A stretch of DNA of 63,565 nt, filler included, from Choristocarpus tenellus KU-1152 (Eukaryota > Protista > Phaeophyceae), in the NCBI GenBank assembly GCA_964200185.2. It is 13 parts of 13 records of this genome, joined end to end, with 100 filler letters (N's around TTAATTAATTAA, not from the genome) between each part and the next. Parts side by side here need not be neighbours in the genome. Positions count along the whole stretch, not along the records: positions 14,586 to 25,683 come from CAXNAD020002510.1; 12 more parts are not named here. One strand, written 5' to 3'. The notes under the pieces were generated by a model. The model made no database searches, was not told the origin of the DNA, and worked only from the letters and a program-made list of their open reading frames with translations. Below are positions 14,586 to 25,783 of this stretch, one piece after another; the first letter of the stretch is position 1, and each line of letters begins with the position of its first letter. Made by a program: the position numbers and the translations under genes.

Positions 14586-16379
14586 CTCTTGAGCTGGTAG
14601 GGTGGTGCATCTTGGATACAAGGCGGGTGGCCGATGAAGAGGTCGTGCGGAGGGTTATTGGGGTCGATAGCAAGGTCTCCGCCTATCCCACTCCATTCTG
14701 TGCTGTGCATGTATTGCTTTACGCTAACCTTCACCCGCCCATCACCGCCTTTTTCAACTCGAAAAGCCCTGTAGCTCGTGATATTGGGGACACGGTTGAC
14801 GCGACCTTCAAGGAGTCCCTTGAAGTTGCCCTTGTTCCGTAGGGTCTTGCAGTATACTGGAACCTCTGTGTAAGAGGCCTGCAGCTGTTCACCCAGCTGT
14901 GTTCTTGTGAATACGTTCTTGCCTTTTATACCACATGAGAACCTGAAGGTGAAATGCAAGCAAGTTAATTTTGAGGCGGGGGCGAAAGAAACGAAGCGGA
15001 GGAGCAATGTATATATGCAGGCACATGCTCCGATGCATGTATATGGAAGTATAAATATAAAAAGGGGTGATGCGTACATTTTTGTTTTGTTTTGTTTCGA
15101 GAGTAGGTTACGAAACAGTTTTGGCAGCTGATAGTACCATGCTTACTTACGCATTGTTTAATTGGAGCTAAAAAGAGGGGTAACAGAATTTGTTTTTGCA
15201 ATTTAGAGCAAATATAATTATCTTCGTAAATCCACCAGGAGCGTCATTCTGTTCGGGCCTCACCGCCGTTAGCAGAAGCGGCAAAGGAGGCGAATCTACC
15301 ATCTTCATCATCATCATCGCGAAGCGCTTTAGACATACGAAGTTCAAACTTTTGCTACCAATATCAGACCGGGCCCGGGGCTGCAGAGTAGGTGCACACA
15401 ACGTTTCAATAACAGTTATTGTGTCTTCCTTCGTAAAAGCGACGAAGAGTGTCATCATCGACATTGTAGTCTCGACATAGCAAACGAAAAAATAGCCCTC
15501 GGTACGAATCTTCACATGTTCTTTTAACCATAACATCAGACCGGTTAAAGTAATAAACATCCACCACTCGAAATACTACTTCGATCCATTTCTTCTACGT
15601 ACTGCTGGGTCACACGGTTTGCATCTAACTCCAACACAGGGTGCGGCCAACATCTCCACAACCAAGGGCAAAACCTACCTCTTTGTTCGCGGCGTAGATT
15701 TCAATTGTGGACTTGTGAGGCATGAGCTGCCCGTATGTATCTCTAACTTTGAATATCAGACATCTAGGCATGGTAACTGTAAAGTGAACCGGGTGAGTAC
15801 GGTCAGATGACATTGTTCTGAGATAGGACTACTGTTCAATCATCAAGCTGGGGGGAGAATATACCGGGTACAAATAACACTGTGTACATACGTCAAACCC
15901 ACCTCTCCACTCCGGTGGATGTTCTTGCGTTAGGTGTGCCATTGCAAGCGTCGATGACATGATTGGATATTCCAAACGATGCCTTGAAAAACTGCATACA
16001 GACGGGAATGCCAGCCGCGAGCATAGATCCACCTCCAGGTCCCAACTTAATCACAGGTACACGGTCGCCAATGAAGTTTCTTGCAATCGCGGCGGTTCTC
16101 ACACGCCCGGATGATGTCCTGCTCTTTGGCCAACGTGCGTGCAAGGAAGGGAACGCTATCTGCCGCGAACTTCTTCACACAGGCTTAGCGCTTGCAGCAG
16201 TCACCCTGTTTGTTGACCGGGATGGGTTCAGCCCATCCTCGGCGAAGCTTGGCACCAGTCACTGAAGCGTCATTGGTAGAAAGCTCCAGCGCATCATTGT
16301 TGACGGACTGGTGAGGGGGCAACACAGGGGGAGAGGCAGGCGATAAAAGCCACCCCCTTGCTGTGGAAGCAACTGTCAT
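14586..16379 (-). pseudogene. Sola3/DUF7869-like transposase, copy 1 (internally deleted)
   Basis: The N-terminal exon from ATG 16379 has CCKR*AC and GIPVCMQFFKASFGISNH (Sola-type VCxxFFxxxxGIS). The C-terminal exon 14942-14586 reads RFSCGIKGKNVFT...NITSYRAFRVEK..GRVKVSVKQY. It is clearly homologous to 45628-46570. Confidence 0.6.
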
Positions 16380-16449
16380 GGTGTTTTCGGGCAACAGGCG
16401 ATCTTGGGCAGTGAGAAGGTCTAGGAGTGATTAGATTCGAAGGCGGGCG

Positions 16450-17735
16450 TATGAACTTTGTTTGAGCTCCGGGCTATCCGCGGGACCACCCTGAGATCCA
16501 TGATCCTGAAAATCCATGTATAACGTTTTTAGGAAGTTGTAAATCCGATTATATCCGTACTTACAAATTGTTTAAAATACAAATCACATACTTCATTGAT
16601 CTTGTACGTTTCCAATGTTCCAAAACCAACTTTGTTTGAGCTCTGGGCTATCCGTGGGATCACCCTGAGATCCATGATCCTGAAAATCTGTGTATAACGT
16701 TTTTAGGAAGTTGTAAATCCGATTATATCCGTACTTACAATTTTTTTTTAATGCAAAGCACATACTTCATTCATCGTGTATGTTTCCAGTGTTCGGTAGC
16801 CAAAACATCAAAAAACAACTAGCACCCTCTGCATTTTTGAAGTACAAAATCTTACCAAATTGGACATTTGGATTCTTGTAAATTGTAGAAGCGACACAAA
16901 GTGGTTCGTTGAGTAAAACTGATCCGGTCGGATCAGTTTTACTCGTGAACGCCCTAAACACGTGCGTTAGTATTTTTAGAAATAGTAAATCCAGTAATAA
17001 CCGTTCTTACAGTTTTTGAAAATACCAAGAACGCACTTCATGGGTCTCACACGTTTCCAATTTTCAGAAACTAAAAGGACACTTCCAACTGGTACCCACA
17101 ATTTATTTAAATACTAAATCCGCTTCTTGGCGTCTTTAGTATTTAAATAAACACTAGAGACCACAAATAAGCGGATCTATGGTATTAAAGATCCGTCCGG
17201 ATCGCGTTTACCGTTTTGAACACCCAAAACACGTGTGTTAGGGTTTTTACGAAATTAGAATGATATTATAATCTTTACATCAACAAATACAGATAAAAAA
17301 CACATCCTTCATTGATCCGGTACGTTTGAAAGGTACGAAACGAAAAGGTCAAAAAAACTGTTACGCTCTGTCTCTTTCCAATATAAAATCGTATGCTGTT
17401 CGATATTCGTATTTTTTATAACGCAATTGTCAAGGGAAAGACAAATCTGAGTTTTGAGGACCGAACGACCAGATGAAATAAAGCAGCACTGAAATAATAA
17501 TAATATTCTAATCTTTACATCAACAAATACAATTACAAACCACATCCTTGATTGATCCAATACGTTTGAAACGTACGAAACAAAAAGGTCACAAAAAACT
17601 GTTACTCTCTGTCTCTTTCCAATATGAAATCGTATGCTGTTCGATATTCGTATTTTTTATAACACAATTGTCAAGGGAAATACAAATCTGATTTTTGAGG
17701 AACCAATGACCAGATGAAAAAAAGCAGCACCTCCC
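16450..17735. repeat. Degenerate tandem array between the divergent transposase and ParB-like genes (a ~174-bp duplication plus ~240-270-bp units)
   Basis: Near-identical pairs at 16455/16629 and 17265/17505. The motif CTTCATTGATC..TACGTTT recurs at ~16591, 16766, 17036, 17307 and 17546. Confidence 0.75.
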
Positions 17736-17828
17736 ATCCCTCAGTCCTCATTTCAATTCGTTCCCTTCAGTACATACCACGCGCACCTGTTATTTACTGA
17801 TCCCCGTCACACCCTCCCAACCTTCGCC

Positions 17829-18267
17829 ATGTCCAGCATTCGCTCAACAACAACCCACCCGCCCGCCGATGGCACTGCCCAAGGATCGAGAACGTGGGAC
17901 AGCGATCTGAAGGGCATTTCCTCGCTCCTAGAACATCACTACCTCGGCACGTACGGGATGAAACTCGGCAAAATCACATGCATGGAGATGGTGCGTCCAC
18001 TGAGCGAGCGTGGCCTTGCGCGCGTCAGCAAGTCTATCCACGAGAAAGGCTGGCTAGAGCAGTTTGCTCCATCTGTGGTAATCCAGCGAGACTCTTTAGG
18101 TAATGGAGACCAGCTCACCGCCGAAACCGCGCTTGCCATTCAAGGACGAACACTGGACGGAAACCATAGAATAACGGTGCTGAAGAGAGAGTTTGATCCC
18201 GAACACGCTTTCATGATGCGGGTCTACATGGAGTTCAACCAAGCAGAAGAGAGACTAGTTGCCAACG
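17829..18267 (+). CDS. ParB/Sulfiredoxin-fold (ParBc-like) protein, exon 1, uninterrupted in this copy
   Basis: 146 open codons with VRPLSERGLARVSKSIHEKGW..FAPSVV...LDGNHRITVLK, matching the ParBc pattern (R....L..L..SI...G...P...DGxHR). GT donor at 18268. Exon 2 is missing here because homology breaks at ~18507. Confidence 0.7.
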
Positions 18268-18949
18268 GTGGGTGATGGAGTGTTGTCGTTATTCCATGAT
18301 CGCCTGATGACTCTTCGGATCTACCAAGTTGTTACTGAGTTTCCTTTGTTTGGTTCATCGTCAGTCAGCCAATTGTTGATCTTTTCGCTGTTGATCTTTT
18401 TTATCCCACGTGGTCTTTCTGTCGATAGCAACATGTTGCTCACTACTGCCTACCGCGTGTGTCCCACGACCGCTTCCCACCTACCCCTTGCCCCGTTCGC
18501 CCACTGCGATGTGTTACAAGTCCAACAACTTTCCCGAAAAAATAGATAAATGCAGATTGGCGTATCTGACAGGGTGTGGGGGGAGGGCAGATCGCAACAA
18601 ACGATATCTCGGGCACGACTGAGATATTCGTACAAAGAGGTCGATCATCATATAATTTCAATACTTATATGCACTCAGTGGTAGCTTCTGTCAGAATAGT
18701 ATCATCATCATCATCCCAACAAAGTGGACCTGCACCTTCGACACAAATGGAAGCTAGAGGCTAAGGAGACATGAAATATGGTACGATCGATAACAAGCAA
18801 GAACTGGAGGTCAAGAAGATACTTTGGGTACCTGGTATGCCATGCCGAACATTGAGCAGTGGGACCCAGGGACAAGATGACGGAGTTAATCGAGGCAATG
18901 CAGCCGGAGCTGCAATCCTGAGCCTGAACCTGAGTCTGAGCCACAAGAA

Positions 18950-19600
18950 TTTACCTATGGACCTAGAGCAGTCTTCACAACACTTGTCCCTGAAGGGGGC
19001 ACGCCCATCGATTGGAGACCCCAAGATTCTTACTTACGGAATGAGAAAAGCAATCGCTGTATCCGCCACTAGGGTAGCAGGACACTAGCAAGAGCAGTAA
19101 CTAAGCCTCCACCAGAAAGGAAAGGATGACCTAGCCGTGGGGAGCCTGGGAGCACTCTAGCCGCTGGGACCATGAACTCATGGAAGAGAACACAGAAGGT
19201 CGGTGGAAGAGGCGGCCAAGGTACAACTGGTCAACGTACGGACCATATTACAACAAGATCCCCTACCAGAGACGAGATCAGGACCAACAGAAGACGTTTA
19301 AACTGTGGACTGATCAAGCATATTGGTCCTTATTCTTTTGAAGGAATATGCTACAACAGTGGAGGTAAAGGAAACCTTCAGATCGTTTGTTGGGCGAGGA
19401 GAGCGACACCGTCTTAACAGGCGGAGGAATTAGCTGGACCAGGGTTGGAGCCAGAAAAGAAAACCAGAGGAAGATTGTCTGCAAAGGGATGCCTGTACAA
19501 GACTTGTAAGTCCGGGAAGTAAATAAGATCTACTCCAGACCATCAAGAACCATCTTCCATATCAGAGGCATCCTGGTGAGGAAGATTGTTAGCAAAGGAC
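18950..19600 (-). mobile_element. Degenerate non-LTR retrotransposon RT remnant (homologous segment at ~13850-14150)
   Basis: The segment is repeated in the window. Minus-strand vestiges include FPDLQVLYRHP and RILGSPIDG (ILGxPIG-like). Confidence 0.3.
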
Positions 19601-22469
19601 TTCACTCAACAAGAGGATGTACAAGACATTCAATTATGATAGGCTTCAAGCCTGGGGGAGTGAGTGCTACGTCCAACAAGAGAAACAGCAAAAGGGGGCT
19701 GGTTCAAATTTTTAACCATAAACTAAGCGAGGGGTCATCATGGGACACGATTGTACGTCACTGTGTTGACTAGATGAATGACGTATGTTTGAGTTCAAGC
19801 AATCAGTGTTCTTCTATTGCGTTGACAAGATAAATGTGATGTGTGTGAGAATTGAACCAATCTGACGTCTTTTAATTCCATTTTTCATGGGGAAGTGTGC
19901 AGAATGGGAGTGTGCACAATAAGATGTTTTAGGTTTGAGAGTTCCAGCAACTCTTTCATTGCCTGCACTCTCATGGGGGAGTGTGCAAAATAGGACAATA
20001 GTGAGGTGTACCTTATTTTGTGTATGAGAGATAGTCATTTTGATTAAGTCCATGTGATGTAACTAATGAGAAAGTACATACAAATTATGAATGGAATATG
20101 TGTAGGTTTTGTTGATTTGAATTCAACTACTTTGATTTAATTGTTGACTTCTGCAGGAAGCACATGTAATAATATAACAAGCAATGAGAAGAGACCCCAC
20201 AAAGGTCACTCTTCTAACTTTAACCATGTAATCACGTTCAGCAAAGGGGGTCGTGTGAGGCTTCACACCTTCTTATCTTAACTACTAACAAATAGCATTG
20301 CCTCCCAAGGTAATTTGCACAAGGAGGTACGACTTCACATATACTCACCAGCTCAAGTAGTGTTGTTTTTTAGTTTCAGGTCGAAGTTGAAGTAATGGTG
20401 GTGTGTTTGTCACAGACTTTCGCATTTTTGTTCCTTCAACACTGTGTCTGGCAACCAAGTTTACATGGTCTGGACCAAATTTTGTAGACTCTGGAATTGG
20501 AACTGTCAGTCAGCGCCTAATTAAAATAATAATTTGTAGAAACGTTTTCCCTGCTGTGAACTATTTGACTTGGTCAAGTCAAATGTCCTTCTCTGAAAAA
20601 AACCCAGCTTTGGTTCAATATTTAGGTTCGCATTTGTGTTAAGTATATTTACCATGGCTTACAACAGCACGCACCTACTGACAAATACAACGCTAATATC
20701 CTGTGGGATAACGCCTTGTCACCCCCAAATCCATTCTTCTTCTGATGCGAAGCGAGATCGATAGCCATAAACACTCTGCAGTATCTCACACAGCATATCG
20801 TCCTCATTGCACCATGTTGGGGAACATCAGAATCCTTGTCATGTATTTATTCCCTTCGTTGTTATGGGGTGCTTTGGTGATCACAGGGTAACACCGTTTG
20901 GGAAGCCATGCTTCACAAACACTATATCTTCTAATCCTCCGTCAAACACAAACACATTCGAAACTTGACCTAACCTTTCGACTGAAGGAGGGTACATTTT
21001 CGCCTTGGTTTTAATGATCGAAGACTGTTCCGCTTGTTTCATGCTAATATTCCTGATAAATGTCCACATTTTGAGCAAGCTTATATGGACGTCCCTTTGC
21101 AGCTCTGGAAAACCTCTCGTTTACGTCAAACTGTCACAGCATTCGATGCCTGCAAGTTATGTACATCCCAAATTAAGCATGCGTCTGTTAACGGGTCATT
21201 TCCATAATGGATTTCACCATTTTCCATAATGGGTTTCACCATAGTGTTATCGGTCAAGGAATTGATCACATTATTCCAAAATCAAAGTAATTAACAACAC
21301 TAAACATCGATGAATCTCTGTTTTCCATACTTCCTCAGCCCACAGACGCGTATATGCAACCAGGCACATAAAATACATTGTTCATGCTACTATTGTAACC
21401 AAATATAACGAAATCCGTAACATGGCCACCCCTCACCCACATGGACAGCCGTCACCCCAACCCACAAACCAAAGATATGTATGTGTTGATGAATAATATG
21501 ATAGTGTGTATTTTCACCCAGTCAGATCCTTGTCGTCCTTCTGCTCTGATATTTTCTTCTATAGCAGGCAACATGATTGCAAGTCTTCCATTAGATATCA
21601 ACTGGTTTGTATCTTTATTGATGTCTTTGTTTATTAATTTACATATTATTTTTTCCTTTCAAGAAGGTTCAATTATATTTGTTTAATATTTCTTCTTTCA
21701 AACAGTCTCTAAGCTCTTGCTGAGACTGACACACCCATATGCTATGCTGTTGAATTCAATATACGCAAGAATATAGTTTTTTTTGGTGCTGCAGCTCAAT
21801 GGCCGTGATTCGATCACGGTTTCTGCGTTCCCATTCAATATTGGGAGCTTCCCATGCTCTTTTTTCCCTTCCTTTTTAGAGAAGATGGTCTGTGCTTTTG
21901 CACCTGCACCTCCTTGATGGAGTTATACAGAATTTCAAACTAAGACTAGCTAGTCCTTGCCTGCCATGCCCTTTTGTGTTGAGGCTTGACCAGATGTATT
22001 CATATCTGATACATCGAAGCTGTGATCTTTCCATGTGCCCAGATATGTCTTATTATCTCACCCCTGATCAAGGTGAAGTGGCACAGATTTGGTTCCCACC
22101 AAATATTAGTTACAAGTGCTAAGTTGTGAGGCGCCCTCACTCGAAAATCTTTTTTCTATGCATCTTTCATACCATGCAGATATATTTATGTGCAGCTGTC
22201 ATGCCTGGCAGTATTCCCTGATTAAGATACTACATTTCTGTCTATCCTATCTTCATGTCAGTTTCTTTCTGCACACATATTTCCTCCATTTCCTATATAC
22301 ACCTATCTGTGTTGTCGTGATAGGCACACGAGGCCACACGAGGGAATGATGTGATACCCACCTTCCGTCCAAAGTACACCTTTTTAATGCCCTTCCCTTA
22401 GGAGATACACCTCAAGGTCTATTTCCTCATATGATATCCGTATTTGCGTCCTTACGATGCCAACATCGA

Positions 22470-22690
22470 TTTGTTTGAGTGGAGCTTACTAACCCCCCTC
22501 GTTCACTTTCCTTGTTCGCTCCTTCTTTCCCTGAGTGACCTTCTGGGGGTTGATCACCCTCCTACCTTGTATCTCTTCGTTCTGTTCCTCCTGTGGGTGT
22601 TCCCGCTCTCCTTCAATCAGAAGAGCCAGTCGGCTGTTTTCGAACTGTTTCACACCACCAGATTTTCTAACGTCAACACTACCTCAAAAG
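22470..22690. repeat. Dispersed repeat, inverse homolog of ~3200-3420
   Basis: The minus-strand translation at 3216-3422 (LFLAFLWVFLFPF..RSARFHLFH) parallels 22444-22869 (LFVLFLLWVFPLSF..QSAVFELFH). Confidence 0.55.
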
Positions 22691-24589
22691 GCGGAAACCT
22701 TTTGGGGTGCAAAGACACACTCACAGATCAATTCCTTGATTACACTGGGACTCATTCTGTAGGTGGTAGGAACACAGTGAGTGTTGGTCGGAAGGGGAGG
22801 AGTGAAGCCACGCCTGTGGCAATTTTTGGTAGTAGTAGCATGAAGATTTTCCCTGAAAGAATAATCTGACCTTGACCCCATTTGAGTCCACTCATACCTT
22901 TGACACGACAACTTGGTACACTACCTCTGACTGATCTACAAAGATGATCGTAAGTTGGCCCGTGCAATATATGATTGTAGTACTCTGGGTTCAGTTCTTC
23001 TTGCTGTTTGTGTAGGCTTGTGGCAATGTAGGTGGGTATAATTGGTCGGATAATCCTGGCTTACTCCACAAGTGGAGTCAACAACCTATTGAAACTCCTT
23101 CAGGGGCCAACGCACGGTTGATCACAATTCTGGGCGAGGCTACTGCTCATGATGCAATGGGCCTAGAATCATAGGCACCGATTAAGCTTTTTGCTTTATA
23201 ATCCAAAAAATATTTTACCTACATATTCTTCCAAAAAAACGACACCATCACCGCTGGAGTAGATACCAGACTACCACCCTATAATTGACCTCTACTACTA
23301 CACACAGATGCTTGGGGAACTAATAAGACGAAGAATCCTCGATCTCTAGGTCGGTATAGTAGGTCGACAGAACGCGTGGATAAAAAAAATTGCTTCGTGA
23401 TCTGTCTTTGAAGAAATGGGGAGGAGAAATGTCCTGGGGGGACGCGATTTAATATACCTACATTTCATTTTCGTTTTTTATTGTGGTGGTATATAGTTCT
23501 ATTAGAGGTCTACGATGTAGATATTAGTGGCATATGTATTATTATGTTCTAAGCACATCGTCCTTGAAAAGCGGACCATCATCACCTCGGATTTTGTGCT
23601 CTTTCCTTGAGAGCAAGCAACCACCATCTTACGGACTTCTGACATCATTAGACAAGAATTAGTACTAGCCCCCAAGCTTCCTAAAGTCACAGAAGAGAGC
23701 TAGTACCATATTTGACACACATATTGTTAAGCCTGCTAACCTGAACAAGTTGAATATCTCTTATACTACATTGGAAACTAACACATGGTCAGCACAGAAA
23801 AAGACTTGGAAGGGTGCGATAGATGATTCGTCTTGACATACATGTATGTATGTTGAGTGCACTGCAATAGTCGTATGTTAGTTAACCATATCATTTCCAA
23901 GATAGCATAACAATAATCCATATGGAAGGATACCTTTCTTCTCCAGGGTTCAAGCTTCTTGCCATTACAGGTCAGTTCAAAATTTTGTCTCCGACCACAT
24001 TGCGACAGTGAGTTGAGTGGGGTGCGTAGTAGACGTTGGTAGTTGCGATTGCTTTCTACTATTCATTGAAGCTATGATGGGTCTCTTGGAAGACAAGTTT
24101 GATGATGAACATGCTTGGTGTCATCATCTCTGTAGTAGTTTGGTCAGGAGGGACGATGGGATCTAGTTGTATTCGGCATCTTTTGGCATAATACCTTGAG
24201 CCGCATGATCGATCACAACGTCTGCTAACCTACAATTATCTTCCACATGCCTGATTGTAGTCACTGTGATTAGTTATTGCGAGCGCTTCCATACGCCATG
24301 ATGCCTGGTACCAGGTGCATAGTGAGAAATCTTGCTATTAGCCACACTTCATCCCACTGCTTACATACTGCTCGCTATATAATACTATTGATAATAATAC
24401 AGTCCCAAACACCCAAGGCTCAGGGTGGACATGAGGTGCTGGATGCTTGTGGAGGTTGTTCCTCATCATTGCTCTTGACCACAACTTGGCACATTGGTAG
24501 TATGTTCCCAACAAACTACGAAGGAGTTAGGTGCCATTGATAACCTGTTCCAGGGTATTTTGAGAAATGGCAAAACACAGTTCTGGCAG

Positions 24590-25088
24590 TGTGTCCCACA
24601 GATGATAGGATTTGAAGAGAGTGGAGGGTGCAACCCGAGCTCCTGCTCAGATTGGGTGGATGGTGTGATTTCCGTCCTGCTTACAAGAAACGTGATGGGT
24701 ATTTGGAATAGAATTACGAGGAGTGAGGAGTTAAGGATTGTTAGGACCAAGCAAATACGGACTATGCCCTCAAGGAGGAAAGGGATGAGGATTTGATTGC
24801 GGTCAGGACTTTGTGATGGAGGTGGAAAGAGTAAGGGTGTGTCCCACAGATGATAGGATTTGAAGAGAGTGGAGGGTGCAGCCCGAGTTCCTGCTCAGAT
24901 TGGGTGGATGGTGTGATTTCCGTCCTGCTCACAAGAAAAGCGAAGGGTATTTGGAGTAGAATTACGAGGAGTGAGGAGGTAAGGATTGTTAGGACCAAGC
25001 AAATACGGACTATGCCCTCAAGGAGGAAAGATATGAGGATTTGATTGCGGTCAGGTCTTTGTGATGGAGGTGGAAAGAGAAAGGGTGC
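24590..25088. repeat. Recent tandem duplication, 2 x ~249 bp
   Basis: GTGTCCCACAGATGATAGG...GGAAAGA is repeated with few substitutions. Confidence 0.9.
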
Positions 25089-25582
25089 CATGCGGAGGTG
25101 CTCCGTGTGTGGTAGAAGGGTCAGTTTTTACTGTGCAACTCCCTCTTCTGGGGGTGAGCTGCTGTGGTGTATGGATTGAACACTGGAGGGCAGTCCATAG
25201 CCACGGACTGCACATGTTACCATGGGCAGGGAGTCTTCCGGGATATGTTTGAGTGCCTGTTCAAGGAGCATAGGCTGGGGAGGCCTGCGCATGGATGTTG
25301 ATGTAGTTCTTCTATGGGGGTATGGTGTTTTTCGGATTATTTTAATGTCTGACCAGATATGTTTTGGGGCGGTAAATGGCAGTGTCTATGTAACTATATA
25401 CTTTCCGTGTGTTTTTGTGCGATATATATTTTCAAGGTACCAAAGGATTGCCCATCCCAGCAGTTCATATCACAGGGACATTGAACTGGATTTCTAGACT
25501 GTTTCGAGGGTGAGACTCGCATTTTCACCACAACGGTGTTGTAGACTGTAGACCAAACAGTGAAAGATGGTGCATAGCAAAC

Positions 25583-25583
<1 letters not shown>

Positions 25584-25629
<46 letters not shown>
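25584..25629. repeat. (GT)n microsatellite
   Basis: Direct. Confidence 0.95.
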
Positions 25630-25632
<3 letters not shown>

Positions 25633-25783
25633 AGCAGGGTGTCCATTCCGGCCCTGACCAGGAGGGTCAGAGTATCTGGGGGGNNNNNNNNNNNNNNNNN
25701 NNNNNNNNNNNNNNNNNNNNNNNNNNNTTAATTAATTAANNNNNNNNNNNNNNNNNNNNNNNNNNNNNNNNNNNNNNNNNNNN

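Follow-up and report, generated by a model that had tools for sequence, protein, structure and literature searches.

Contig CAXNAD020002510.1 of the brown alga Choristocarpus tenellus KU-1152 carries what is very probably the dead remnant, with an internal deletion, of a high-copy, two-gene brown-alga transposon of the Sola1 superfamily. The contig makes up positions 14586-25683 of the window, as the whole stretch of DNA under study is called here (63,565 nucleotides, filler included); it is the genomic part that was analysed, and all positions are counted along the whole stretch. Intact members of the family would possess two divergently transcribed, spliced genes, one encoding a Sola1 DDE transposase and the other an accessory protein. 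Judging from a relative of 843 amino acids in Cladosiphon, this second product would start with a ParB/sulfiredoxin (Srx) fold containing the motif DGNHR, continue through a helical region, and finish with an N6/N4 methyltransferase-like end. In this model, the transposase would perform the cutting and pasting, the accessory protein would bind the element's own DNA via its ParB-like module and mark or organise it, and a repeat array located between the two start codons would represent a family-specific feature of a shared promoter region. The mechanism of self-binding and marking follows a proposal made for the Ectocarpus element Sola1-1_Ec32 (PMC12477816). In the window copy, neither gene can work; consequently, it would be at most movable in trans.

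Linkage and copy number of the two genes

The initial annotation had described a three-part module at 14586-18510, and all of its parts are indeed present there: transposase remnants on the minus strand, a repeat array, and a head-to-head gene with the motif LDGNHR. The decay of both genes had gone unremarked in that annotation. A transposase and a ParB-like gene on opposite strands have been found in five of the seven loci for which upstream sequence is available, in at least four genera and at 57-88% identity, and the orientation is head-to-head wherever the first exon of the transposase is in view. In another Choristocarpus locus (L008), transposase exon 1, the array, ParB-like exon 1, an intron, and exon 2 are all seen. 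In Sphacelaria rigidula (L007), exon 1 of each gene is present, ~860 bp apart, while in Pylaiella littoralis (L005), transposase catalytic fragments lie 5-6 kb upstream on the opposite strand. A contig from a Logan run (L002) has the opposite-strand pair at ~72% nucleotide identity in the coding parts. Because the pairing recurs in Choristocarpus, Sphacelaria, Pylaiella, and the Logan-run locus, linkage of the two genes is probably a property of the element itself. The proposal of a two-gene DNA transposon module with a ParB/Srx-fold partner is thus upheld by opposite-strand linkage across several brown-alga genera.

The module also belongs to a high-copy family. The region 14586-20327 is covered by thousands of short public contigs of the apparent source organism that are 90-99% similar to it, and in the contigs of one run, both the transposase and the ParB-like gene are high-copy at similar depth. 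Unique sequence begins at ~20293-20328, where depth drops ~200-fold and where, from 20293 onward, the contigs have no differences from the stretch. It should be noted that all of the public sequencing runs compared consisted of contigs, one run giving 7776 contigs over the stretch, and contig depth is therefore a repeat indicator only. Given such a copy number and the thousands of similar contigs, the copies are not one segmental duplication, a possibility that had been raised at the outset. Nucleotide identity between the stretch and Choristocarpus tenellus contigs is 85-90%, and relatives of the module's genes have been found in Sphacelaria, Pylaiella, Ectocarpus, and Cladosiphon.

The transposase and its superfamily

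Two remnants of the transposase gene, both on the minus strand, remain in the window copy. The first (14586-14944) is an exon for the C-terminal part of the Pfam family DUF7869 (PF25273), running from RFSCGIKGK to PPYQLK. The stretch 14588-14944 matches this family at about the gathering score, which is 26 bits (25.9-26.2 bits were obtained, depending on how much of the stretch was queried; E 7e-6), and its product is 87-89% identical to two annotated DUF7869 proteins of Choristocarpus tenellus, P0138 and P0139. The open frame continues past the left contig edge at 14586, so that the 3' end of the gene is cut. The second remnant (15896-16394) is the pseudogenised exon 1, which encodes an N-terminal cysteine region, CC..C..F, and was recognised by tblastx to a 166-amino-acid open reading frame (ORF) of L002. 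Three-frame translation against this intact ORF reveals the decay of the exon: a stop codon interrupts the frame at 16185-16187, and the frame shifts near 16076. The transposase exon 1 region is 88% identical in nucleotides to positions 147-737 of L008.

Between these remnants, ~720 bp have been lost at a junction in 15130-15133, as is seen by comparison with another Choristocarpus contig, L010. Positions 997-1544 of L010 correspond to window positions 15130-14586 and positions 196-277 to 15214-15133, whereas positions 278-996, which hold the exons for P0138 residues 21-108, have no counterpart in the window. The deletion, which can be placed at 15131/15132, has removed two catalytic exons with the sequences QVDNCVSENKN and MMVGHTHIKIDQIFS (the QVDN..ENKN and GHTH..IDQ blocks), and a tblastn search over the whole piece did not find the catalytic transposase exons. 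With the deletion, the stop, and the frameshift, the window copy does not have an intact DDE catalytic core.

The initial annotation called the transposase Sola3-like. It is instead the curated transposase of Sola1-1_Ec32 (the protein library entry Sola1-1_Ec32_tpase, supplement 2 of PMC12477816) that is matched block by block. When Sola1-1_Ec32_tpase was compared by reading with the window, the L002 ORF, and P0138 taken together, all conserved blocks proved to be shared: CC..C..F, ..EQ.., VP....GSM.A.G.PVC..F, QVDN..ENKNN, MMVGHTHI.IDQIFS, R.PNIT..AF, and PPY.LK; the 14586-14944 exon is collinear with the last two of these. Furthermore, when four motif strings were searched in the transposon protein library, each occurred once, and all of them at the part of the file that holds Sola1-1_Ec32_tpase. 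The Ectocarpus element had itself been classed as Sola-1 by its best blastp match to Repbase Sola1-1_PPa (PMC12477816). On this evidence, where the nearest curated match found was a Sola-1 entry and the comparison took in no Sola3 protein, the transposase is Sola1 and not Sola3. Pfam DUF7869, on which a literature search found no papers, corresponds to the catalytic and C-terminal part of the Sola1 DDE transposase.

The ParB-like accessory gene

Exon 1 of the accessory gene occupies 17829-18267 on the plus strand. The corresponding ORF (17829-18269) starts with an ATG at 17829, contains LDGNHR, and ends in a GT splice donor at 18268-18269. This donor is also conserved in L001, L002, and L008; thus, where conserved exon boundaries had been claimed, the donor of exon 1 is one that holds. 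The spliced models were searched exon by exon.

By sequence, the ParB likeness is nearly invisible. Neither the window exon nor any of 95 relatives matches Pfam ParB_N (PF02195), and searches of PDB by sequence and by profile, using alignments A1 and A2, gave chance-level matches only. The weak Pfam matches among the 95 relatives were to GmrSD_N, DndB, DUF1015, DUF6551, and DUF3723, which we take to be members of the ParB clan. An exhaustive profile search yielded 132 homologues of exon 1, 71 of them at E <= 1e-10. In an alignment of 95 sequences, G111 is invariant, and at least 90% of the sequences agree at R56, G74, D110, H113, and R114. With four of its residues (D110, G111, H113, and R114) varying little or not at all, the DGNHR motif is not a product of chance.

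Structure prediction was more informative. AlphaFold2 with an alignment of 10 sequences gave an unusable model (predicted local distance difference test score, pLDDT, 36.6); repeated with the 95 sequences, it gave a model of exon 1 with a pLDDT of 86 and a predicted template modeling score of 0.75. When this model was compared with PDB by Foldseek, places 1-49 were all taken by the ParB/Srx superfamily, including PadC, ParB with CDP or CTPγS, Noc, KorB, sulfiredoxin, SbnI, and a serine kinase. A wide search with VIA returned 12 chains at Z >= 2, the top 10 of them ParB/Srx-type, with scores of Z 8.8 for PadC (root-mean-square deviation [rmsd] 2.2 over 90 residues), Z 8.4 for sulfiredoxin, and Z 8.2 for KorB. 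Viral and ESM-Atlas structure libraries agree with this fold, viral ParB-domain proteins being among the neighbours. At the level of predicted structure, a ParB/Srx fold for exon 1 can therefore be considered established: what was called ParB-like is so by fold, as seen with both Foldseek and VIA, and not by a match to PF02195. Since Pfam does not recognise the ParB domain here, it would escape routine annotation.

The remainder of the gene is missing from the window copy. The stretch 18268-18529 on the plus strand, identified by similarity to intact copies, holds intron 1 and no more than the opening bases of exon 2. Similarity to the three Choristocarpus copies L001, L008, and L009 by blastn ends at 18507, and the alignment shares TCAACAAC up to 18529, beyond which L008 and L009 remain collinear with L001 onward through exon 2. 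The similarity thus ends at ~18529, and exons 2 onward of the window's ParB-like gene are gone; the later exons known from L001, L002, and L006 were not found anywhere in the piece. Between copies, the spliceosomal introns of the gene are conserved.

What a complete product might look like can be judged from the longest relative, P0096 of Cladosiphon okamuranus (843 amino acids), with which L001 and L002 are collinear to ~residue 383 and the exons of L006 from Ectocarpus to residue 777. After the ParB domain, P0096 has a helical region, which appears by eye to hold a helix-turn-helix-like stretch, then a cysteine-rich and acidic segment, and then a C-terminal domain. In an alignment-free comparison of language-model features, all 30 of the 30 neighbours of the C-terminus were clusters of PF01555, N6_N4_Mtase, at 0.90-0.92, while a region search with the C-terminus retrieved P0096 itself only. 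On mixed evidence, then, the C-terminal domain of P0096 would resemble an N6/N4 DNA methyltransferase.

One annotated relative deserves a separate comment. At L006 1973-5814 (Ectocarpus sp. CCAP 1310/34), the protein P0101 (431 amino acids) joins ~320 unrelated N-terminal residues to ParB-like exon 1 and is probably a mis-merged gene model. The remaining collinear accessory exons of this locus (to ~10074) are unannotated or split among other gene calls.

Alternative explanations

Several points weigh against the reading of this piece as a dead copy of a two-gene Sola1 element. The transposase of Sola1-1_Ec32 was compared by reading and motif look-up with no computed alignment, and the likeness of the accessory protein to the 1104-amino-acid protein of that element rests on the published description. 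Of the seven loci for which upstream sequence exists, two (L006 from Ectocarpus and the truncated copy L009) have no adjacent transposase, and no RNA runs with this stretch were found. Terminal inverted repeats (TIRs) and a target-site duplication (TSD) were not located, since the contig, starting at 14586, does not reach the left end and the copy is broken on the right at ~18529; the location of both genes inside one element is thus presumed. Finally, no methyltransferase was matched by the C-terminus of P0096 in Pfam, PDB, PHROGs, or NCBIfam, and the position expected for (D/N)PPY is occupied, as read by eye, by NRAPH in the Cladosiphon protein and by PGVND at the Ectocarpus locus L006.

Given this divergence at the (D/N)PPY position, the accessory family may not be the published one, or it may lack catalytic activity. 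It could be postulated that the architecture is that of the published Sola1 element, but that the accessory protein is a distinct variant, with its ParB/Srx domain fused to a methyltransferase-derived domain that has lost (D/N)PPY, and that the protein serves as a non-catalytic DNA binder or clamp instead of a methylase. Such a variant would be consistent with the absence of any match on P0096 to PF01555 or to another methyltransferase hidden Markov model (HMM), with the residues found at motif IV (NRAPH or PGVND), and with language-model features that nevertheless still point to N6_N4_Mtase. However, the methyltransferase-like assignment consists of that alignment-free lead and of motifs read by eye, while the published 1104-amino-acid protein is known by description. 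A non-catalytic variant is thus possible, although on the unlikely side.

The initial annotation had favoured a two-gene system not reported before, in which a Sola3-like transposon has recruited a ParB-like partner that may act as a loader, regulator, targeting factor, or anti-silencing factor. In its favour, a two-gene module is indeed present, the ParB fold is real, and Pfam is blind to the ParB domain. However, the transposase matches a curated Sola-1 entry whose best blastp match is Repbase Sola1-1_PPa, and the combination of a Sola1 transposase and a ParB-like gene on the other strand has already been published: exactly this pairing was reported in 2025 for Sola1-1_Ec32 (PMC12477816). 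The claim of novelty fails because the gene pairing has been published for Ectocarpus (Genome Biol 2025, PMC12477816), and an unreported system is now very improbable.

Least probable of all is that the ParB-like gene comes from the host or from a virus (a phaeovirus, for example), is unrelated to the transposon, and merely lies beside it in this copy. Brown-alga genomes do carry many viral insertions, and the structural neighbours include viral ParB-domain proteins. Nevertheless, five loci from at least four genera retain the opposite-strand pairing (57-88% identity), the two genes occur in many copies with similar depth, and the spliceosomal introns are conserved between copies. A dead copy of a two-gene Sola1 transposon thus remains the best explanation.

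Related systems

The closest known system is Sola1-1_Ec32, whose full element is 21.5 kb in length and present in 1989 copies, the transposase copies often being pseudogenised. Its TIRs (AACCG..CGGTT) are 282 bp long, its TSD is 4 bp, and the gene on the opposite strand encodes a ParB-like plus DNA-methyltransferase protein of 1104 amino acids (PMC12477816). Like it, the window family is high-copy and has the blocks of a brown-alga Sola1 DDE transposase and an opposite-strand accessory gene with a ParB-like start. Unlike it, the window family resides in another host lineage and has diverged, and the window copy is a fragment of ~4 kb rather than an element of 21.5 kb. Furthermore, the accessory protein of Sola1-1_Ec32 has a recognisable DNA methyltransferase domain, whereas the full-length relatives of the window gene are without a methyltransferase HMM match and without DPPY.

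A second system is the giant DNA transposon Plavaka of the red alga Bostrychia moritziana, in which the gene PAG3 encodes an N-terminal ParB-like domain (bioRxiv 10.1101/2025.02.11.637652; Curr Biol 2025). Tandem inverted-repeat arrays adjoin this gene, and binding of the protein to its own element was proposed by the authors (bioRxiv 10.1101/2025.02.11.637652). The window gene is similar both in the ParB-like N-terminus of its accessory protein and in the tandem repeat array with palindromes beside it. However, the superfamily of the PAG3 element is Plavaka/CACTA-like, and the C-terminal partner of its ParB-like domain is a 2-oxoglutarate-dependent oxygenase, not a methyltransferase-like domain.

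The window exon shares its fold with the CTP-binding N-terminal domain of the bacterial and plasmid proteins ParB, KorB, Noc, and PadC (Z 8-9, rmsd 2.2-2.5 over ~90 residues). Its G.HR motif falls where these proteins have GERR/GxxR. In contrast to these proteins, with which identity is 13-19%, the window gene has no Pfam match and is eukaryotic, spliced, and borne on a transposon, without a ParA partner.

A possible link to fungi also emerged. The best ESM-Atlas structural neighbour of exon 1 (17829-18269) is an Ascomycota DUF3723 cluster (template modeling score 0.71 over 129 residues, rmsd 2.8), and the same cluster is the second feature neighbour (0.91) of P0096 residues 1-330. In addition, two relatives have weak matches to PF12520 (E 0.03). 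Among the accessory genes of the fungal Starship giant transposons, DUF3723 is a conserved one, and its function has been listed as "Unknown" (Mol Biol Evol 2022, PMC9156397). The predicted structures and weak Pfam matches thus suggest a likeness to a conserved accessory gene of another giant eukaryotic transposon. Unlike the window family, Starships are found in another kingdom and use a tyrosine recombinase as their transposition enzyme. In the library of papers searched, none named both DUF3723 and ParB.

These comparisons open no new class: the architecture has appeared in print before, and the window copy, part of a diverged family, is a fragment that cannot function. What is added is fold-level proof, from predicted structure, for a brown-alga ParB-like family undetected by Pfam, evidence that the transposase and the ParB-like gene stay paired in several orders of brown algae, and the possible structural link to the Starship DUF3723 gene. 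ParB-type proteins are the CTP-switch DNA clamps of bacteria, and it is a recent observation that they recur among the accessory genes of giant transposons in eukaryotes; to our knowledge, no such accessory protein has been experimentally tested. A wider hypothesis would hold that ParB/Srx accessory proteins are a recurrent and for the most part unrecognised module of giant eukaryotic transposons (Sola1, Plavaka PAG3, and Starship DUF3723), acting as nucleotide-dependent binders on element-specific repeats, and that the methyltransferase-like domain of the brown-alga proteins is non-catalytic. As a whole, this generalisation is speculative and rather improbable.

The repeat array and flanking DNA

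The DNA between the two genes contains a degenerate tandem array of 1.3 kb (16454-17730), detected by TRF and by a repeat search, with 5-7 repeats of 174-271 bp, periods of 174, 241, and 271 bp, and common cores of 50 and 62 nt. It includes several palindromes, a perfect one of 16+16 at 16911-16944, another at 17102-17151, and GTACGTTTGAAACGTAC at ~17561, which are possible candidate binding sites. In L008 from Choristocarpus, the array is conserved at 76-82%, with a period of 269 bp. It is absent from the same intergenic position in L002, L007, and L005, and a search for array sequence in L002 gave 9-14-nt chance words only. Missing from three more distant relatives, the array is a feature of a sub-family rather than a fixed part of the module; the three-part arrangement originally described therefore applies to the window and L008 and does not extend to these relatives.

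On the minus strand, both 241-bp array units (17646-17744 and 17333-17572) carry the open sequence ..SLDNCVIKNTN... It is faintly similar to the QVDNCVSENKN block of the transposase; with a tblastn E of 0.5, the resemblance was judged to be chance.

The break in the accessory gene is adjoined by other high-copy repeat DNA, recognised by contig depth and unclassified (18530-20320). A terminus of the CGGTT type was looked for near the repeat/unique boundary at ~20300 and none was seen, and the ORFs downstream of the break (18771-25494) gave no Pfam matches. Within this repeat DNA, the summed contig depth of 19932-20327 is 4-5x that of the rest of the repeat region. Given this depth and its end at the transition to unique sequence, the segment probably represents a distinct repeat of very high copy number, for instance a miniature inverted-repeat transposable element or an element terminus. 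Farther to the right, 24589-25087 consists of a 248-bp unit present twice at 95% identity with a GC skew of +0.45; open frames run through this repeat on both strands and have no Pfam match. A perfect (GT)23 microsatellite (25585-25630) adjoins the right edge of the piece.

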